Positions 23,260-62,849 of a stretch of 64,000 nucleotides of DNA are shown piece by piece. The first letter of the stretch is position 1, and each line of letters opens with the position of its first letter. Location: contig JBNJNM010000009.1 in the NCBI GenBank assembly GCA_052426225.1, positions 124,001 through 188,000 on the forward strand. Direction: 5' to 3'. The notes under the pieces were generated by a model that saw nothing but the letters and a program-made list of their open reading frames with translations, did no database searches and had not been told where the DNA came from. This DNA comes from Zancudomyces culisetae HAW-14-8. Its lineage: Eukaryota; Fungi; Kickxellomycota. The position numbers and the translations under genes are program-made.

Positions 23260-25455
23260 TTACACATTACTTTGTAATCGTGGCTCGCCCTGGTAACGTG
23301 GACGGTATGGATTCGGAATTCGTACGTAATATGGCGAATCATACTCCGAATCAGAATATTTTGTGTTTTCATCCATTCTCATTGGTTTATTTGGTCTTTT
23401 TTGAGGGTACTTGTCATCATTGGGTCTTTTGGGTCTAATCGGCTCATTGGTATCATAACGCCCATAATAATCATTATATCCATTATATCCATTATGTCCA
23501 TTGTGTCCATTGTGTCCATTTTGTCCATTTTTTTTGTCATCATCATCATCATCACCATCATCATAATCATAATCAGGCCTGGATGGTCCATTTGGTCTTT
23601 GTGGTCTTTGTGGTCTTTGTGGTCTTTGTGGTCTTTGTGGTCTTTGTGGATCATATGAAGGTCGTCCTTCGCTGTCATACGCATCCTTTGTGCTCACATA
23701 ATTTTTAACTGCCGAGGTTGTATAATTGATTGCACTTGTAGTTGTATAATCAACTGTGGTTACAATCACACACTCAGTAACACTAGACGTTGTATATGCA
23801 ACGATGTTTGATGTAACATACTCAGAGGTTCTTGATGTGATATGCTCACTGATAGATGTCGTTTTGTAGAACACAGTACTCGTTTCTGTGTATTTGATAA
23901 CTGTTGGCTCTGTATAGTAAATACATGTTGGTGTCACATAGTACACAACGCTGGAGGTTTTATAATAAACTGTGCTTGGTGATGTGTAGCTTATATCTGA
24001 TGTTGTTGTGTAGTAAACAGTGCTAGATGCTGTATAGTCGATAGAAGAGGAGAGTATACAATCTGTGGTGCTAAACGTAGGATGCTCAACGGTTTCAACT
24101 TTTGTATAGTAAATAACATTCGATTCGGTATTACAAACCGTACTGCTTTCTGTGTTGTATATCACACTTGGTGTTGTGTAATATACTGTGCTTTCTGATG
24201 AACCATATACTGTACTTGTTTTGGTGTGACATGCTATGCTTGTTGAGGTATAACAAGTCGTGGTTTGTGTTGTATAGTGAATTATACTTGGTGTTGTGTA
24301 ATATAATGTGGTCGATGTAGTATAGTAACTCGTACTCTGTGTTGTGTAGTTTATACTGGTTGTTGATGTGTAGAAAATACTGGGTGTTCCATAGTAAATT
24401 GCACTGGGGAGTGTGCGGTAAAGCTCAGATGTTTTTGTGTTATTGATGACAGTATATGTAACATAGTAGGAGACACTAGATGTTGTGCAGTAGCTAGTAC
24501 TAAGTGCTGTGTCGTAGATGGTGCTAGTTTTTGTATCGTAGATGGTACTACATTCCGTATCATAAGTAATGCTGGTTATTGTGCAATGTGTTACACTTGA
24601 ATCTGTAACATAGATTGTGGTTGGCTGTGTATAGTAGATTGTACTTGTTTCTGTGGTATATACAGTGCTTGACTCTGTATGGTTAATTGTACTATATGTT
24701 TTGTAGAATACAGTAGATGTTGATGTGTACTGTACAATAGATGTTGTTGTGTACACAACAATGCTAGATGTTGTATAATCTGTTGTGCTTGTCAGTATAC
24801 AGTCTGTAATACTTGATGTTGTATATTCTACAACGCTTGATGTTGTGTACTCTACAGTTTTAGATGTTGTATACTCACTGGTGCTAGATGTTTTATAAAG
24901 ACTGACGCTGGATGTTGTGTACTCAACTACGCTTGGATAGGTGTACTCAACAACAGTGGATGTGATATAACTAGTGGTGCTGGATGTTGTGTAATATACG
25001 GTGGATGGCGTTGTATAAGATACGACTGATGATGTCACATAAGTAATTACGCTCGAAGTTGCATATTCTGTTTTGGTTGGGGTTGTTGTGTTATAAACGG
25101 TTTTGCTTGTGTTATATTTCTGAGATTGTGACTGTGGTTCATAAGGCGCTCGTTTTATATCAGTGACTGGTTTATATCCCATTTTTTGCTTATCCATTGG
25201 GTACTCTACCTTGGGATAACCAGGTTTGTATACAGGATATCTTGGATAGGGTTCGTACTCATCGATATCGTAATCAGGAATTGCCATCTCGTCCTGAATA
25301 TTGTTTCTATCCTGGATGTTGTTTCTATCCTGGATATTCTCTCTATCCTGAATATTGTTTCTATCCATATCTCTTCCAATCACAGCGGCGTTTGCTAGGT
25401 TTGCCGCAAACAACAAACAGCCTATAACACTGCTAAAACCAACCTTTGGTTTCAT
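23260..25455 (-). CDS. Secreted Tyr/Thr/Ser-rich octapeptide-repeat protein (731 aa), unknown function
   Basis: Signal-peptide-like N-terminus (MKPKVGFSSVIGCLLFAANLANA), RxNIQD x4, 58 consecutive Y-T-T-S-S-x-V-x-like units, and C-terminal PQR and NG(H/Y) repeats. Confidence 0.85.
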   Translation of the reverse strand: MKPKVGFSSVIGCLLFAANLANAAVIGRDMDRNNIQDRENIQDRNNIQDRNNIQDEMAIPDYDIDEYEPYPRYPVYKPGYPKVEYPMDKQKMGYKPVTDIKRAPYEPQSQSQKYNTSKTVYNTTTPTKTEYATSSVITYVTSSVVSYTTPSTVYYTTSSTTSYITSTVVEYTYPSVVEYTTSSVSLYKTSSTSEYTTSKTVEYTTSSVVEYTTSSITDCILTSTTDYTTSSIVVYTTTSIVQYTSTSTVFYKTYSTINHTESSTVYTTETSTIYYTQPTTIYVTDSSVTHCTITSITYDTECSTIYDTKTSTIYDTALSTSYCTTSSVSYYVTYTVINNTKTSELYRTLPSAIYYGTPSIFYTSTTSINYTTQSTSYYTTSTTLYYTTPSIIHYTTQTTTCYTSTSIACHTKTSTVYGSSESTVYYTTPSVIYNTESSTVCNTESNVIYYTKVETVEHPTFSTTDCILSSSIDYTASSTVYYTTTSDISYTSPSTVYYKTSSVVYYVTPTCIYYTEPTVIKYTETSTVFYKTTSISEHITSRTSEYVTSNIVAYTTSSVTECVIVTTVDYTTTSAINYTTSAVKNYVSTKDAYDSEGRPSYDPQRPQRPQRPQRPQRPQRPNGPSRPDYDYDDGDDDDDDKKNGQNGHNGHNGHNGYNGYNDYYGRYDTNEPIRPKRPNDDKYPQKRPNKPMRMDENTKYSDSEYDSPYYVRIPNPYRPRYQGEPRLQSNV
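23677..25065 (-). repeat. Degenerate 24-bp coding tandem repeat (58 units, one of them 7 aa)
   Basis: 1389 nt = 463 aa = 58x8-1; the register is kept from YATSSVIT to YVSTKDAY. Confidence 0.9.
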
Positions 25456-54794: not shown

Positions 54795-57700
54795 TTTTCT
54801 CACCTTTATCTTCCATTTACCCTAAAACTCGTCTAACTCGTACCTTTATAGTATGATGTTTATCTATACCTATTGTATTTACTTTTTTTCTTCACTTGTA
54901 AAACTCAAAAAAGCTACAATAGTACTCTTTCTTTTTCTTTTCTTGTTATATAAGACTTGTGTTTGATAGTTTATTCGACCCTTTCCTTTATATTAGCGTC
55001 CTAATATTCGTCTAGCTTGATGCCGGTTCGATTATATTCTGCCTGTGGTATTATACTTTATTGAATATACTATCAAAAATATCGCTAAAGTTGTCCCTTC
55101 TCTTTTTCGCTTTAAAAAAACGCTTTAAAATTGTTTTATCCCACCCCTCTTGTACTTAATATTTCTTTACTCTTTAATATTTACTCTAGTTTGACCAAAG
55201 TCCCAAGGTTAAATAAAAGATATAAAAAAAAGGAGGGGGAGAAAAAAAAGCGACGTGATAAACTAAACCCTGTTGTTCTAATAGTGCTGTGCAGTTATTT
55301 TGCTGATTTTTAGCCTGGTACTTTCACCGTTAATATGGTACAATATGCCTTCGATTTGAAATGTAAAAGGTTTCTATGATCTCACAAATAGCTTCAATAT
55401 ACAAAACCAATACGTTCCCTTTATAATATCTATTTTATAAACATGATATATTAAACAAAATAAAAAACAAAGGCCAAGCGAAATATTATAAATATCTTCT
55501 ACATTTATTTTTTCTAAAATTTATTTTATTCTCGTGCTTTTTTTGGTTGCTATTAATTGATTTTACTAGGAAATAATTTGCGCTTTTTAGGATTTTCAAA
55601 AAATAAAATATATTAAATAACCCTATTCTGAGAAATTTACTAAAAAGTAAATAGTATTAATTAGCTATTTTGGAATACTCTTATTATTATTTTACATTAT
55701 TACTTTTTTTGCTCCTATAATCCTGCGAAAAAAATTTTTTTTTTTGTATTAGTTCTTATAGCTCTTACAAATAAAACCATTGTAATTTCCCTAGTTTTCA
55801 AACTGCACTCCATAAAACACACTAAAATATTTTTTTAATATTATACAAGGTGCTTCAATGGAATGAGTGCAACAATGGAAAACGCAAGCACAAGTGGGGG
55901 GGAGGAAGCAGGGAAAATATTGGGTAAACAAGGAACAGGAATGAGTACATTATGCTCCCTCACCTCCCCCCCTTACACCAAGCTCCGTGTCTTTTGGACC
56001 CTACCTTCCAGTTGGTGTTTCTGGATAAACATCTCAGACCTTTTTTTTTCATCATCTGGCTCGATTTTGCCCACTATTACATTTTGAATTGTGGTTAAAA
56101 ATTCAACAGGAAAAAAATTATGAAAAAACACTTTTCATGCCCTGTTACCTAAAATATGTACCATTTTTTATCACTAATGGCTGAAAACAATTCTTTATTA
56201 TTAATTCAAATGTAAGACCATTAACCTTTTCCACATGTATTTTGACGACCATTTATAATTTTCTGCTTATCCTCACTTCTTGCAAAAACATGCTCTTCAG
56301 TATCCCTTAATGTTTTTATTTTCAATGTACTGATTTGATAGTTTAAAGAAGTAACCAATCACAAATTAATAAAATTATCTTGAAGTGAACACCAATGCTT
56401 TACAAAAAAAAAAGTGCTTGAGTTATTGCTCACTTTATATTTTCTTGACATTTCTTAGTATTCATCAGGAACTTGCGGATTCATAAACCACTTGGAATTC
56501 AGATTCAGATTAGCGTTTAGTTGCTGCTATTGGTTTGTTTATATTTCTTTTTTCACTTTTGTTTGTAAAAGTTTAACGCTAAAACGTAAAATTAAAAAAA
56601 TATTATGCAAATTTTAATTGCAAAAAAATAATGCATTCGCAGCGTAATCTTGCCTATTTACTTGTAAATGGTTTTTGTTAAATGATCTCCATCAAAATGC
56701 TAGTTAAAGTTTGGAACAAATCGACTATTGTTTGGATATAGATTTTCAATTTCCAAATCGAAGAGCTCATATTGGAAAAATTAATTTACATAAACAAAAA
56801 AACTAATTTTTTTTTAAAAAAAGAACTTTTAGTATTGAATACATATTTAGCAGTCTATAATTTAAGAGCTAAAATGTTTACAAGACTAAGGGAAGAAATA
56901 AATGATGGGAAAGGAATGAGAAAAAAATAGAAAAATTCCACAGTTCTTCGTGTCTTTGAAAAGGAGAATGCAAAATAAATGCCGTGTTGGTTAGTTGTAA
57001 GATATTATTGTGCTTTTCAACCAAGCAGTACCAGGTCAATATTTTAGTATGATATATTAAAGTTCAAAACCAGGAAAGAAATAAAAAATTGAAAATTGAA
57101 AATACGAATTTCCGCTTCCTCCCCTCCACCTTATCAAACAATTTCAGTTCAGCATACAATCCAAGCTAAGCCCTAACATAAACTTTCCATTTAGTTGTTA
57201 CTTGAAAGTGATTGCCAAAACGAATTTGTAATAAAGTTGAGCATCGTGAAATAACAAATCACAAATCGTATACAACATATTTTAGCTAATGTTTTTTTTG
57301 CTCAAATTAAAGTATTAAAGAGTGGCGGAAATAAATATGGTGGTAGAAAACGGAGGATGAAGGATGGAGATAAGAGTAAAATTGATTAATACTAAAGAAT
57401 TCAAGAATACTCTGTTCAGCTCAATAATGGAAAACCAGTTGTGGTGTTGATTTCCCCAAATACCTAGCGACTTCACTGTATTTGCAAAGATGTTCATATT
57501 ATTTAATCATCTTAATTTTAATTAAGCGCATAAAACGCCACTTTGTTAGTAGCAACCAATCATTCTCGTGGATTAGAAAATAAATCTTTAAAGCATTTTT
57601 ATAAAGCCCATAAAATTGCAGGAAAGAACTAGAAAGTATGAGTTAAATTGATTTATTAGACATGCTAAAATAAATTTATATATATCTTTCTTTGATAAAC

Positions 57701-58198
57701 AAACTTAAAATTTACATTATTTATAATCAAATGCTAAAAAAAAAGTTAAACTCCAAAGTAGCATCAATATAAATATATTTTTTTAAAGTTGGTTAAAAAA
57801 TGTCATATAGTAAACCAAGACATACCTTGAAACAGTTTAGTTTAGTAATCATATGTTTTTAATTAGTATTATGATTTTTATTACAAGTTTTAAACAGTAT
57901 ATACAAATTTATGCTTTAACTTTCAGTAGTAAAGTTTATGTATCTTTGTATAGTTTTAATAGTATTTTTTAAGTTAGCAGTAAAAGTATATAAGTGCAGG
58001 GAAATAGCACTAAATAAAACACATCTTTAATCCAAATAAATAGTAGTAATAAGTTCTTTTATTCAGTATACTAATATTCAATAGTTAATAATAACAATAT
58101 TAACGGATATTTGATATAGTAAGAGAATAGGATAAAGTTCAAGTATATTTTAAGTTATTAAAAGTTTAAGTTAAAATAAAAATATAACAAAAAATATC

Positions 58199-58960
58199 TG
58201 TCGCATTATTAACAATTTGTACAATAGCACGTGGATGTGCCTGAAAATGGTACACTCAGTGCGAAAATGCAAATTCATTTTTGTTTACTTTTTTTAAATA
58301 AAATAATTTTGAGCTCAGTATGCAATCAATTTTTCATACTGAGCTAGTTCAATAATGATGAATGTAAAATGTAAAATGATCCCATGCATTTTACATTTAT
58401 CATTAATAACAAGCAAATTAGTAATAATATTATAACAATAGTCATATTTTAGTATTTAGTTTTTATATAGTGGTTTAACATTCGAATAGTATATTTAAGG
58501 AGACGTATGGATGACATATGAAAACATCATCCATGTCTCGATACGGAATACTATAATAAAATAATTAAATAAAATCAAATATAAACCAAAAGATAAATTA
58601 GCAATAATGTTTTTAAACAGTTGGATTGGAACCGAATGTGACTCCAGGAGGGAGTCACACACTTCTACCAGCATGAGCAGGGGCAGCAGCATGGATCAGG
58701 ATGCAGGGGTATTAAGTCCCCGCACCCTTGGTGAGTTGACAGAAAGTGTCCGTCAACTCCAGATCCGTAGGAGCCCGGAAGAAATGTCGGTGAGTACAAT
58801 TTCACCGACACTGTACAGGGGTATTAGCTCACCCGAGCACCCCTCGATGCACATTGCATTACGCAATAGAAGTGCATCAACCATCAGTGATCGTACCAGA
58901 ACCGGTATAACACGTGATGGTAGCGCTAATGGAAGTAGTGATACTTCACATTATGCGACA
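58199..58960 (+). repeat. 5' LTR (762 bp)
   Basis: Identical by eye to 61099-61860 (offset 2900); 8-bp terminal inverted repeats, TG..CA ends. Confidence 0.96.
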
Positions 58961-61087
58961 TGGCGTCAGCGACAGGATCATCATTCTACTGATGATCACA
59001 TGGATAGAAGACCGATGAGTGCAAGCCCGGAATTGTATGAATCACCAGCACTGTACTTCTCACCTAGAAGTTCTGATAGTGCGAGAACACCGTCACCACC
59101 TAGTCCCACGACGGCACAAGTTGCGAAAAGATTGTTTGTAAGCGGGGTTAATAAAATAAAGGAGTACGCACCGAAAACCATTGAAATTTTTAATTTTGAT
59201 ACTGCACCAGGAAAACAAAAAGAAAATACTAAAACAGAAGCGAGTACCAGCAAAATAAGACAACAAGTAATAGGGAGTAAATCAGCTAAAGAAGTGTTGG
59301 AATCAAACGTGAAGGCTACTCAGGAGCGAATGAGGAAAGGTCAAGATAACAATGCACCAGGTTGGTTACCAGTACCACCGGCACCGTTTAGCAATTCATG
59401 GGATCAAGATCCCGAGGAGTTTTTGAATAAGTTTTGCAAACATGTGAACTCATTGGAGCAGATTTTAACATTAGAGGAAACTTACCAGTACTTGGAAACT
59501 TTGTTGGAAGGCTCGATAAAGAAAACTTTAATGGATCTTATGGTTATAGAAGACAACTGGGAAGATTATTGCAAAATGTTTATAAACACTTGCAATAAAT
59601 ACAGGGATACTTCGGAGGCACGGAAACAGTTTGAAAAGTACAATTTATATATTAATAACCCAATAACAACTTTTGCAGATTTAAAGAGATTATTTAAAAA
59701 TATGAAAGTTGATGACGAAACTAAAATGACAGAAGAAGTTTTTAAAAAACTAAACCCGTCGGATAAACAGCATTTAAGGAATAATAAGGAAAGTATTACC
59801 ATGAAGTCAATGTTAAAATATATGTTACAACGTGAGGAAGATATATTGGAATCGAAAAAGGCTCAGGGAAAAATAAATACAAAATCAGATAATAACAAAA
59901 ATACTAAAATTACAAATACATATAAAAAACATTTTGAGAATAACACTATTCAGAATGGTAACAAAAGTGATTATTATAACAGTGAAGAGCAGGATAATAA
60001 CCAGTTTAAAATTAGAGGGTTAACAAGGAAAATATCGGAAGATAAATACGAAACTCCAACCAAAGCAGGGAAACAGCAGCGGTCAGACATTAGTAAGGTA
60101 AAGTGCTATAAGTGTCAACAATACGGACATTATGCTAATAACTGTTCGACAGAGCTGGAAGACATAGAGATGAGAACAGCAACACCAATAAAGAGAATTG
60201 AGGATAACCCGAAGGAAATAAATTGGGTCGAAGTACAAGAAGGAACCAATGAACATCCCATATACACCCAGGACGAATTAAGCACCAAGATAAATGCTAT
60301 CATAGGCAAAGTAAAAATTAACGGCAATGAAACCAGTTTTCAATACGACAGCGGAGCTGCCACAAACTTGATGAGTCACACCATGGCAGAAACTCTTGGA
60401 TTAGGGATAGGAGAAGAAACAGATACTACTTTAGTAGGAATAGGAGGACACCAGTCTAAGCCAAAGTATTACCCATCAGTGAAGTTAAATTTTGATACGT
60501 TTACACTAAATGCACCTATATATTCTATAGAAAATGGAAAACCAAACTTACTGTTGTTAGGAGTTGACTTAATTGCAAGCTTGAAAGCTAACATAAATTT
60601 GAAAGACAACCTGATAACCTGCACAATAAAAGGGATAAATCATAAAATACCGATAGCTTTAAGAAAGGAGGATTCGAGCGTAATCAAGGAAAACGAAAAA
60701 ATTTGTAACACTGTTGAAGTTTTGGCCAAAACGAACCCAAAGTCTAGTAAGAAAAAGATTGGGAAAACTACAAAACATAACTATTACAATAATGAAATGG
60801 AACTTACCGACTGGAAAAATTCAGGAGAGAAAACCATGATTCAGGACCATAATTGTAAAAATTCGAAATCTAACAAAGTTACAAAGGTCAAATGTGAAAA
60901 CAGTATACTGGAAAATTTTAAAATTAAGGACCTACAATTAAAATCTAAAAATATAAATGAAAACGAAAATGAAAATTGGAAATTTGAACATGATACAAAA
61001 GACAAATGCATATCAAGAGACCTAACCGAAAACAAAAAAATAAAACAACCAACGACAGTTCCAATGATCGAGGACGATCAGACTTAA
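58607..61087 (+). CDS. Retrotransposon Gag-aspartyl protease polyprotein (826 aa), no RT/RNase H/integrase
   Basis: Capsid-like PAPFSNSWDQDPEEFLNKF, CCHC knuckle CYKCQQYGHYANNC (60104-60145), protease FQYDSGAATNLMS (DSG at 60347) with LLLGVDLI. The stop codon abuts the PPT. The true start Met is uncertain. Confidence 0.9.
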   Translation: MFLNSWIGTECDSRRESHTSTSMSRGSSMDQDAGVLSPRTLGELTESVRQLQIRRSPEEMSVSTISPTLYRGISSPEHPSMHIALRNRSASTISDRTRTGITRDGSANGSSDTSHYATWRQRQDHHSTDDHMDRRPMSASPELYESPALYFSPRSSDSARTPSPPSPTTAQVAKRLFVSGVNKIKEYAPKTIEIFNFDTAPGKQKENTKTEASTSKIRQQVIGSKSAKEVLESNVKATQERMRKGQDNNAPGWLPVPPAPFSNSWDQDPEEFLNKFCKHVNSLEQILTLEETYQYLETLLEGSIKKTLMDLMVIEDNWEDYCKMFINTCNKYRDTSEARKQFEKYNLYINNPITTFADLKRLFKNMKVDDETKMTEEVFKKLNPSDKQHLRNNKESITMKSMLKYMLQREEDILESKKAQGKINTKSDNNKNTKITNTYKKHFENNTIQNGNKSDYYNSEEQDNNQFKIRGLTRKISEDKYETPTKAGKQQRSDISKVKCYKCQQYGHYANNCSTELEDIEMRTATPIKRIEDNPKEINWVEVQEGTNEHPIYTQDELSTKINAIIGKVKINGNETSFQYDSGAATNLMSHTMAETLGLGIGEETDTTLVGIGGHQSKPKYYPSVKLNFDTFTLNAPIYSIENGKPNLLLLGVDLIASLKANINLKDNLITCTIKGINHKIPIALRKEDSSVIKENEKICNTVEVLAKTNPKSSKKKIGKTTKHNYYNNEMELTDWKNSGEKTMIQDHNCKNSKSNKVTKVKCENSILENFKIKDLQLKSKNINENENENWKFEHDTKDKCISRDLTENKKIKQPTTVPMIEDDQT
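58961..58978 (+). other. Primer-binding site TGGCGTCAGCGACAGGAT (tRNA 3' end complement, probably tRNA-Ser)
   Basis: The reverse complement ATCCTGTCGCTGACG-CCA has the layout T-stem strand + acceptor strand + G73 + CCA and sits directly after the 5' LTR. Confidence 0.85.
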
Positions 61088-61098
61088 AAGGGGAGGAA
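61086..61098 (+). other. Polypurine tract AAAAGGGGAGGAA
   Basis: 13 purines immediately 5' of the 3' LTR. Confidence 0.9.
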
Positions 61099-61860
61099 TG
61101 TCGCATTATTAACAATTTGTACAATAGCACGTGGATGTGCCTGAAAATGGTACACTCAGTGCGAAAATGCAAATTCATTTTTGTTTACTTTTTTTAAATA
61201 AAATAATTTTGAGCTCAGTATGCAATCAATTTTTCATACTGAGCTAGTTCAATAATGATGAATGTAAAATGTAAAATGATCCCATGCATTTTACATTTAT
61301 CATTAATAACAAGCAAATTAGTAATAATATTATAACAATAGTCATATTTTAGTATTTAGTTTTTATATAGTGGTTTAACATTCGAATAGTATATTTAAGG
61401 AGACGTATGGATGACATATGAAAACATCATCCATGTCTCGATACGGAATACTATAATAAAATAATTAAATAAAATCAAATATAAACCAAAAGATAAATTA
61501 GCAATAATGTTTTTAAACAGTTGGATTGGAACCGAATGTGACTCCAGGAGGGAGTCACACACTTCTACCAGCATGAGCAGGGGCAGCAGCATGGATCAGG
61601 ATGCAGGGGTATTAAGTCCCCGCACCCTTGGTGAGTTGACAGAAAGTGTCCGTCAACTCCAGATCCGTAGGAGCCCGGAAGAAATGTCGGTGAGTACAAT
61701 TTCACCGACACTGTACAGGGGTATTAGCTCACCCGAGCACCCCTCGATGCACATTGCATTACGCAATAGAAGTGCATCAACCATCAGTGATCGTACCAGA
61801 ACCGGTATAACACGTGATGGTAGCGCTAATGGAAGTAGTGATACTTCACATTATGCGACA
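61099..61860 (+). repeat. 3' LTR (762 bp)
   Basis: Copy of 58199-58960; ends 3 nt before the mature tRNA-Tyr. Confidence 0.96.
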
Positions 61861-61863
61861 TAT

Positions 61864-61945
61864 CCGAGAATAGCTCAGCGGTAGAGCGGGAGACTGTAGT
61901 CAAACTGTTATCTCTAGGTCCCTGGTTCAAATCCGGGTTCTCGGA
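61864..61945 (+). tRNA. tRNA-Tyr (anticodon GTA) with a 10-nt intron (61900-61909)
   Basis: Acceptor CCGAGAA/TTCTCGG+A (C1-G72 and A73 are eukaryotic Tyr identity elements), D arm GCTC/GAGC, anticodon GTA at 61896-61898, intron after nt 37, T arm CCTGG-TTCAAAT-CCGGG, T-run terminator from about 61950. Confidence 0.96.
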
Positions 61946-62849
61946 TTACTTTTTATTTTTTTTTCAAATTATTCTTGTAGTGTAATAGTGTAGTATAACG
62001 CCTACATACTTTTTATCAAATTAAGTGACCGAGTTTGTCAGCAATACTCTGGCTACGTCCACTTATACAGTTTAATCTTCATACCGTTAAATAATATTTA
62101 TCACCATTTAACACTATCAATACAATGGTACCCTCTATACTACTTTAGTAAACATTTAGCTAAATATTTATTTCCCTTATTTCGTAAACTTCTTGTAGCT
62201 CCACTGATAAGTCTATTCTTGAACGTTTTTATTATATTTCTTTATATTATTATCGATGCCCGTGTTCTACTTAGCGGTTAGTTCTACTCTGAATTGTACA
62301 TGTCCTACCTTGCTCACCATCACAACTTCAATTCATTGTTATCTTCAACTTTTGACAAACTAGCGTATTAAACCACTGTAGTATAATGATACAGTTTAAT
62401 ATAGTGAATCAAGTTGTGGGAATGGTATGATTCTTTGATTTCTCTGAGGTATCTGACTCATCTAGTATATCTTTTTGTTGTAGTTTGTAAAATGAGTAGT
62501 GTACAACCATAATGATTGTTCGATGACTGGTAAAATATTATTATCTATTACCACTTAAAAAAAATCCTAAAACCCTAATCTTAGCGCGTAAATCTTTCAT
62601 GGTTTAAAGTTATATTTAATTGTTTAAATGTGGCCAATTACTGAATTTTGTGTAAGAGCTGGTGAATTACTAAATTGTCTACCCAAATCTAACGTGTATG
62701 AGGCTCTTTTTAAAGTTGGGACAAAAATAAACACAAAAATTAAATAGGATTGTTTTTTTAACTGTTTTAACATTTTTCAATGAAATAAATATTGCAAACC
62801 TAAATCATAGCATCATAAAGTAAACCCAATCGAGAAAAAAAGAGTAAAA

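Follow-up and report, generated by a model that had tools for sequence, protein, structure and literature searches.

Covarying hairpins across the Gag-coding long terminal repeat of a gag-protease-only Ty3/gypsy element in Zancudomyces culisetae

Introduction

The closest described counterpart of the locus considered here, a 3662-bp long terminal repeat (LTR) element in the fungus Zancudomyces culisetae HAW-14-8, is Ty1 TIPIRT, the highly structured 5′ 380 nt of Ty1 genomic RNA, which overlaps the GAG open reading frame (ORF), contains the primer-binding site (PBS) and serves translation initiation, packaging and the initiation of reverse transcription, its stems having been validated by compensatory mutations (PMC5454406, PMC4974528). 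[quoted passage not shown] Defective retroelements that depend on helpers are exemplified by the mini-Ty1/helper assay (PMC4974528) and by mouse VL30 (PMC4859993).

The element lies in a 64,000-nt stretch of assembly GCA_052426225.1 (contig JBNJNM010000009.1, positions 124,001 to 188,000, forward strand), referred to below as the window, in whose coordinates positions are given unless another locus is named. A chain of short hairpins runs across its LTR and PBS, eight of them overprinting the start of gag, and the pairing, more than the sequence, is retained in five families of elements resident in the same genome.

A chain of hairpins across the LTR and primer-binding site

The hairpins, numbered H1 to H12 from 5′ to 3′, and the features that frame them are as follows.

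58199–58960, plus strand: 5′ LTR, 762 nt, with short inverted termini; identical to 61099–61860
58312–58345, plus strand: H1, 11-bp perfect stem in the AT-rich upstream (presumed U3) part
58353–58405, plus strand: H2, long AT-rich hairpin of 20 bp including two G.U pairs, plus 3 inner bp
58500–58539, plus strand: H3, 5+8 bp with a 2-nt bulge, just after a TATA-like motif
58555–58606, plus strand: A-rich leader, weakly paired, directly 5′ of the start codon
58607–61087, plus strand: gag-protease ORF of 826 amino acids (aa); its ATG lies 354 nt inside the LTR, and it passes the LTR end and then the PBS, ending at the polypurine tract
58637–58659, plus strand: H4, 9-bp perfect stem
58699–58727, plus strand: H5, bulged hairpin over the most conserved peptide block, including the 58702–58724 stem
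58733–58759, plus strand: H6, 8-bp perfect stem, extendable to 11 bp
58785–58810, plus strand: H7, 9 perfect bp (10 in the fold)
58817–58844, plus strand: H8, two-tier hairpin, 6+4 bp
58846–58878, plus strand: H9, two-tier hairpin, 7+5 bp
58880–58921, plus strand: H10, long bulged hairpin, 15 bp
58924–58957, plus strand: H11, 14-bp hairpin ending 3 nt before the LTR end
58961–58978, plus strand: PBS, directly abutting the LTR and lying within the ORF, with complementarity to the 3′ end of a tRNA of Ser type
58974–58999, plus strand: H12, 8–9 bp with a perfect 8-bp core at 58976–58997; the stem takes in the last PBS bases
59090–59114, plus strand: claimed thirteenth stem, unsupported; 5 bp, 15-nt loop, −6 kcal/mol

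H1 to H11 thus lie inside the LTR, H12 overlaps the 3′ end of the PBS, and H4 to H11 overprint the start of gag. In the 354 nt from the start codon to the LTR end (58607–58960), five perfect stems of 7 bp or more, with loops no longer than 40 nt, are present against 0.56 expected, a number reached in none of 300 dinucleotide shuffles, while the other 1957 nt of the ORF hold six against 5.0 expected, which is the chance level. RNAfold assigns the same 354 nt −143.6 kcal/mol, or z −9.1 against dinucleotide shuffles; against synonymous-codon shuffles the coding part of the LTR reaches z −7.4, at one end of the span of z −3.2 to −7.4 covered by eight family representatives. A scan of 57000–62400 with a sliding frame of 120 nt gave negative z in nearly all LTR windows, with minima of −8.5 and −10.2, and z near zero between the LTRs and in the flanks. 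Two controls behaved differently from the LTR: shuffles fold better than the 354 nt of gag that come next (z +2.0), and in family F (below), an unrelated LTR family that shares the primer site, the equivalent part has no excess structure (z −0.15). Rfam returned nothing above noise in 58150–59200, and only two tRNAs in the window reach the gathering score.

These results bear on an earlier note on this DNA, which had listed 13 stems, called them unrelated to one another and hence no simple repeat, described the A-rich stretch at 58555–58606 as unstructured and proposed comparison with shuffles that preserve dinucleotides and codons. Twelve stems (H1–H12) lie where it placed them; no internal direct-repeat family was found among them; the A-rich stretch is 65% A and has the lowest mean pairing probability of the region (0.40); and folding exceeds both kinds of shuffle, as the z values above attest. 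The thirteenth stem, at 59090–59114 or 59115, was rejected, being at chance level and disrupted, in full-length copies that are otherwise intact, by G59110C and G59113T, which no compensatory change offsets.

Pairing maintained through sequence change

A six-frame search of the genome with the LTR-borne peptide found 147 places, which fall into five families: A, the gag-protease-only element studied here; B, represented so far by LTRs only; C, with subfamilies C1 and C2; D; and E. A strict RNAalifold consensus over the five families retains only 32 pairs because stems shift register between families; for that reason the reference structure was tested pair by pair and homologous segments were folded separately.

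In an alignment of 16 sequences, 73.4% of cells pair in the hairpins as drawn, against 37–42% in controls in which the structure was slid along the alignment; 42 pairs are changed on both sides (18–25 in the slid controls), and the covariation score of 0.219 (0.07–0.10 in the slid controls) was reached in none of 500 shuffles. With one sequence per family, compensatory double changes are found at 40 of 115 pairs against 11–20 in slid controls, and with the reference family omitted 68% of cells still pair against 34–42%. Folded singly, the homologous segments of A, B, C1, C2 and D form a hairpin at all eight positions from H4 to H11, and those of family E at H4 to H9, the shorter E LTR being without H10 and H11, so that the aligned stretch enters the PBS. 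H1–H3 and H12 are likewise kept in most families.

The upstream hairpins differ in how they are kept. H1 has 9–14 bp with compensatory changes in B, C and D (z −3.5 to −7.0) and only a weak 6-bp stem in E (z −2.0); H2 has a counterpart of 23 bp in family B, the remaining families carrying different long hairpins at that place; and H3 keeps the sequence of its 3′ arm throughout the families, the fold being clear in A, B, C2 and E (z −3.0 to −5.3) and weak in C1 and D. Within the coding part, H4, whose 5-nt purine loop is conserved in families A–D, shows a G-C to A-U compensatory change inside family A and double changes across families at seven of nine pairs; between A and B three of its pairs differ on both sides, and Asp and Glu codons trade places. 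H5 is formed by 9–13 bp in A, C1, C2, D and E and by 5 bp in B, the stem of family C using G.U pairs, and H6 by 10–12 bp in every family, with two pairs changed on both sides in E, one of these double changes being a synonymous Leu change that pairs with a synonymous Gln change. All six family representatives form H7 (7–11 bp, z −2.7 to −6.3), and both tiers of H8 show compensatory changes in B and D. The outer stem of H9 is conserved in A–C, another 7-bp stem forming at the same place in D and E; H10 has 10–17 bp in A–D; H11 has 12–14 bp in A, B, C1, C2 and D with almost unrelated arm sequences; and H12 is found in A, C1, C2, D and E with changed pairing partners.

The LTR-borne frame under these stems is truly coding, with a ratio of non-synonymous to synonymous divergence (dN/dS) of 0.1–0.45 between families. 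Synonymous divergence itself, save between the closely related C1 and C2, runs from 0.7 to saturation, change ample enough to destroy unselected stems. The corresponding ratio of proportions of differences (pN/pS) is 0.09 over the H5/H6 block and 0.84 over the 3′ arm of H10 and H11, where stems of 12–17 bp persist, a gradient which indicates that the upstream hairpins are written into a constrained peptide largely through synonymous sites and that the downstream peptide has only to keep an open frame while tracking the RNA. Of the family A variants, those common to several copies lie only upstream, and 58660–58950 holds singletons only, at about the density found elsewhere, as expected if active lineages are constrained there and dead copies decay evenly. 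The peptide has a core of about 33 residues at 58679–58777, running roughly from Gly-Ser-Ser-Met-Asp-Gln to Ile-Arg-Arg-Ser-Pro-Glu, that is almost invariant in the five families; that it has to do with the targeting of tRNA genes, or with phosphorylation-based regulation, is no more than conjecture.

Reverse transcriptases are able to generate short inverted duplications, and hairpins that arose as template-switch by-products of reverse transcription, by chance or from base composition would need no selection, a view to which the little variation available for testing within family A also lends itself. It is nevertheless extremely improbable, given that the observed stem counts and energies were reached by no shuffle, that hairpins stand at the same eight positions although synonymous sites are near saturation, and that compensatory changes exceed all controls. 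Excess stability together with compensatory change across families indicates that the structure is selected; on this comparative sequence evidence, the hairpin architecture is a selected one, neither chance nor simple repeat.

Families sharing the design and the setting of the element

Every family has the A-rich leader, followed by an ATG whose place shifts by two codons at most, and in none does a stop interrupt the frame as it passes out of the LTR; in the families for which full-length 5′ ends were obtained (A, C1, C2, D, E), that frame runs on through one and the same primer site. The 16-nt PBS is identical in A, C1, C2, D, E and the unrelated family F. In the element at 58961–58978 and at loci L081, L073, L125 and L097 the PBS is read in two frames, as Trp-Arg-Gln-Arg-Gln-Asp in A, D and E and as Met-Ala-Ser-Ala-Thr-Gly in C. 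Full-length gag-pol elements were seen for C, D and E, C and D including frames of about 1630 aa that start inside the LTR, and an E-type element at L042 carrying gag, protease, reverse transcriptase (RT), RNase H and integrase in Ty3/gypsy order; the 3′ LTR of this family E element is interrupted, at L042:8550-9986 (minus strand), by a different, chromodomain-bearing integrase of chromovirus type. The Gag of family A is 67% identical to that of C over the first 300 aa and 51% identical to that of E over the knuckle-protease part, values that mark family A as a gag-protease-only offshoot of the clade. The hairpin array is ancestral to the clade and shared with its autonomous families.

Family F, the sixth and unrelated AT-rich LTR family, was met at L026:2268-3180, with the same tRNA-Ser-type primer site and an LTR without a reading frame; this LTR still carries a small hairpin, which takes in the primer site's 3′ end.

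In the AT-rich genome of 27 Mb the family A LTR recurs at least 41 times more, mostly solo, at 92–100% identity; further LTR copies, in both orientations, have a tRNA gene 3–12 nt away. In nearly every solo LTR the LTR-borne frame is unbroken and reads into the flank, as in the 125-aa frame at 61507–61884, and at least four such frames have been deposited as Z. culisetae ‘hypothetical proteins’ (OMH80460.1, OMH78404.1, OMH82249.1, OMH83560.1). An NCBI protein of Z. culisetae matches copies in the present genome at 99.5–100% identity. A word-indexed search and an exhaustive profile search, the latter of 1.8 billion representative proteins, found relatives of the LTR-borne peptide in Z. culisetae only, plus one spurious Wolbachia match, and the design variant therefore appears lineage-specific.

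Two clean chimeric LTRs join family A upstream to another family downstream, the upstream part being 94–100% identical to family A: one (L122, G000:C21:3116421-3117106) passes to family B with a crossover at about 58770–58785 in window terms, and the other (L093, G000:C6:959394-960106) to family E at about 58690–58715. They fit strand transfer or template switching between co-packaged RNAs, and hint that the conserved block lies in R, the region repeated at both RNA ends. The hairpin chain might accordingly be conceived as a modular packaging and strand-transfer ‘code’ shared by the co-resident families, whose RNAs would be co-packaged, with A living on the polymerases of several autonomous families. 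Co-packaging would follow from the same hairpin positions and primer site in all families, and would in turn explain the inter-family chimeras; we hold such a code to be possible but rather doubtful, and give equally little credence to its corollary that the Gag leader peptide borne by the LTR is, in its downstream part, nothing but RNA structure read through by the ribosome.

The remaining features of the element and its flank are these.

61086–61098, plus strand: polypurine tract, overlapping the last base of the stop codon (61085–61087) and abutting the 3′ LTR
61099–61860, plus strand: 3′ LTR, with hairpins as in the 5′ LTR at coordinates +2900
61864–61945, plus strand: tRNA gene with an intron, 3 nt downstream of the 3′ LTR; Rfam tRNA, 57.8 bits, anticodon Tyr-GUA by eye

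The two LTRs are 100% identical to each other on direct comparison, and a 4-bp target-site duplication read in the sequence flanks the element and reaches the first base of the adjoining tRNA gene, which Rfam found and ARAGORN did not call. Pfam identifies a zf-CCHC knuckle, Asp_protease_2 and gag-asp_proteas in the ORF. RT, RNase H and integrase are absent from the 3.66-kb element, whose ORF ends at the polypurine tract; because these pol domains are absent, it is termed a non-autonomous derivative and not a complete Ty3/gypsy (Metaviridae) member. The three domains do stand in that order in the E-type relative at L042 and in the frames of 1632 aa in families C and D. The PBS of the element has one mismatch to a tRNA-Ser(AGA) gene lying in L015; agreement at 15 of 16 bases recurs at about 19 sites of the genome, all counted as sequence matches only.

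Elsewhere, the same gag-protease element forms a tandem LTR-internal-LTR-internal-LTR array (G000:C6:1371390-1377951; L002, L003, L008), with three identical LTRs at a spacing of exactly 2900 bp, that ends 3 nt before a tRNA-Thr gene. In the window itself, 23861–25068 is taken up by a long run of 24-nt (8-codon) repeats that have diverged from one another, probably a gene with a repetitive coding sequence and unrelated to the LTR hairpins.

The folded strand and the candidate function

It is fairly probable, in our estimation, that the element is a non-autonomous member of the Z. culisetae Ty3/gypsy clade and that its hairpin array is a cis-acting replication domain, most likely folded in plus-strand RNA. 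The element is a gag-protease-only member of a clade that targets tRNA genes, and its LTR, nearly half of which encodes the N-terminus of Gag, would be organised as a series of separate local hairpins formed in a single-stranded intermediate of replication, most likely the plus-strand genomic RNA. H4–H11 together with H12 would make up the 5′ leader of R, U5 and PBS, and H1–H3 would sit in the copy of U3 at the RNA 3′ end. Selection holds each hairpin while its sequence drifts, in H5 and H6 mostly through synonymous sites; at H10 and H11 the peptide would be a passenger of the RNA.

By analogy with Ty1 TIPIRT and retroviral leaders, the array may offer binding sites for Gag or nucleocapsid together with sites for dimerisation and packaging, may present the tRNA-Ser primer site, with H11 and H12 flanking and partly masking the PBS, and may assist minus-strand transfer. 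Since the design and the primer site are common to all families, the gag-protease-only family A could use the RT and integrase of its autonomous relatives. Position and analogy are what suggest these functions: the chain fills exactly the space from start codon to PBS, and the element has no non-coding interior that could hold cis signals elsewhere.

As regards the molecule that folds, H4–H12 lie between the conserved start codon and the PBS and are thus present in any transcript that encodes Gag, which makes plus-strand genomic RNA the obvious carrier. Over families B–E, G.U cells number 125 and A.C cells 104, against a slid background of 143 and 177, and several pairs show the series G-C, G-U, A-U; this G.U bias weakly favours the plus strand. 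The folded molecule, like the boundaries of R and the function, we infer.

Several observations weigh against a replication domain folded in plus-strand RNA. The complementary strand of 58607–58960 folds equally well (z −8.8), so that sequence alone does not single out the plus strand as the folded one, and the excess of G.U over A.C, found in A, B and D and in neither C nor E, is modest overall. H1–H3 lie upstream of any plausible start site, and a single role in the 5′ leader cannot therefore cover the whole array. No loop motif is common to all hairpins, and no conserved palindromic loop marks a dimerisation site: the short palindromes seen, of 4 nt in the loops of H5 and H7 and, in family A, of 8 nt between H7 and H8, include none present in all families. 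The comparative set comprises about six independent lineages from one genome, and the structure tested was drawn from one of them, A. The chimeric LTRs, finally, could be explained by DNA recombination between neighbouring copies in tRNA-anchored stacks.

The symmetry of the two strands bears on the proposal that the folded molecule is complementary DNA, the minus-strand strong-stop copy of R and U5, acting in first-strand transfer as the TAR/cTAR hairpins of HIV-1 do. In most families the minus strand equals or surpasses the plus strand in folding, A.C cells are as many as G.U cells in C and E, and the chimeras switch family within the block of highest conservation, the outcome to be looked for if heterologous strand transfer takes place in R. 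The proposal, which is compatible with the RNA reading, is on its own unlikely: G.U exceeds A.C in A, B and D although the background favours A.C, H1–H3 fall outside any strong-stop product, and H12, lying beyond the PBS, is not in strong-stop DNA.

Perfect inverted repeats are symmetric between strands in another sense, as sites in double-stranded DNA, where dimeric proteins or cruciforms might serve the promoter, the integrase or the RNA polymerase III machinery; every copy lies 3–12 nt from a tRNA gene, and sequence conservation is seen beside the TATA-like motif, in the 3′ arm of H3 and the block that follows. Protein-binding sites conserve sequence, however, and what is conserved here is mostly the pairing, the loops differing in length and content and the arms of H11 being unrelated in four families, while a G-C, G-U, A-U series at one and the same pair makes sense only in single strands. 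Palindromes acting in duplex DNA are accordingly very improbable.

The hairpins may also serve the RNA in other ways, slowing ribosomes on the first 350 nt and so affecting the choice between translation and packaging, blocking decay, or evading or feeding small-RNA silencing. That eight hairpins follow directly behind the unstructured A-rich leader and the start codon suits such roles, and H2, at 20 bp and more, is long enough to resemble a small-RNA precursor; H2 alone reaches the length of about 20 bp or more looked for in such precursors, and its only Rfam matches, miRNA-like ones, are far below threshold. The stems of H4–H12 measure 7–14 bp, those of H4–H11 being too short for Dicer-type processing. 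The array moreover stops exactly at the PBS hairpin, the remaining gag being less structured than random, which is a better fit to a replication signal, and such other roles for the RNA have little likelihood in our view.

The earlier note had put forward a selected RNA architecture on the plus strand. Selection is upheld, the array being kept in five families by compensatory changes, among them synonymous-synonymous codon pairs, over a truly coding frame; the assignment to the plus strand draws some weak encouragement from the G.U:A.C count of 125:104 and none from the equal z of the two strands. The note's suggestion that the array lets a non-autonomous element compete for helper enzymes fared unevenly, since the array is shared with C, D and E and is in that respect no private device of A, while among the families it is A whose array is the most stable and whose copies are the most numerous.

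Comparison with known systems

The note's remark that it knew of no described LTR organised in this way was too sweeping in view of Ty1 TIPIRT, which overlaps GAG and holds the PBS (PMC5454406, PMC4974528), and of the similar R-U5 leaders of retroviruses. Like TIPIRT, which has a short 5′ untranslated region, the array is a putative structured 5′ domain over the Gag frame with the PBS inside the ORF. No sequence similarity was found between the two, and the likeness, on the side of the present element, rests on sequence analysis. Ty1 is copia-type and primed by initiator tRNA-Met and carries its PBS about 95 nt from the RNA start, whereas the Z. culisetae element is of Ty3/gypsy type with a tRNA-Ser-like primer and has about 354 nt of coding LTR before the PBS; TIPIRT is built on a long-range pseudoknot and kissing loops, the array on a linear chain of eight or nine short independent hairpins.

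Retroviral leader stem-loops serve packaging, dimerisation, primer placement and strand transfer. In the R-U5 leader (TAR, poly(A) hairpin, PBS domain, dimerisation and packaging stem-loops), as here, consecutive stem-loops surround the PBS, but those leaders are mostly non-coding, with gag after the PBS, while in the Z. culisetae element the array is translated from H4 on and part of the LTR is coding; in further contrast, hairpins also occupy the upstream, U3-like part. Yeast Ty3, whose 5′ dimerisation site is a structure of comparable type, resembles the present element in belonging to the Metaviridae and inserting next to tRNA genes. Its tRNA-iMet primer site is bipartite, GAG3 starts downstream of the LTR, and we know of no LTR-borne Gag N-terminus or hairpin chain described for it. 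Mini-Ty1 and VL30 are defective elements that keep cis signals (LTR, PBS, packaging region) shared with the helper, and family A is similar in that its hairpins are shared with those of the autonomous families and not distinct from them; unlike those elements, it retains Gag and protease and is without RT, RNase H and integrase only.

Searches of the literature turned up no account of these elements. As signals held in common by a gag-protease-only element and its helpers the array is a concrete candidate, and the design would explain how a very compact element without a non-coding interior can carry cis signals. Evidence from natural covariation is scarce for Ty3/gypsy elements, and a single genome with five diverged families bearing the same hairpin chain provides a ready-made comparative data set in which RNA structure can be set against protein frame pair by pair. 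Seen beside the systems above, this is not a new kind of system but a variant both clear and unusual. It belongs to a Ty3/gypsy clade whose LTR is Gag-coding for nearly half its length; a linear chain of short, independent hairpins takes the place of a pseudoknot or of a small number of long stem-loops; the upstream LTR bears conserved hairpins as well; and natural covariation extends over five co-resident families.

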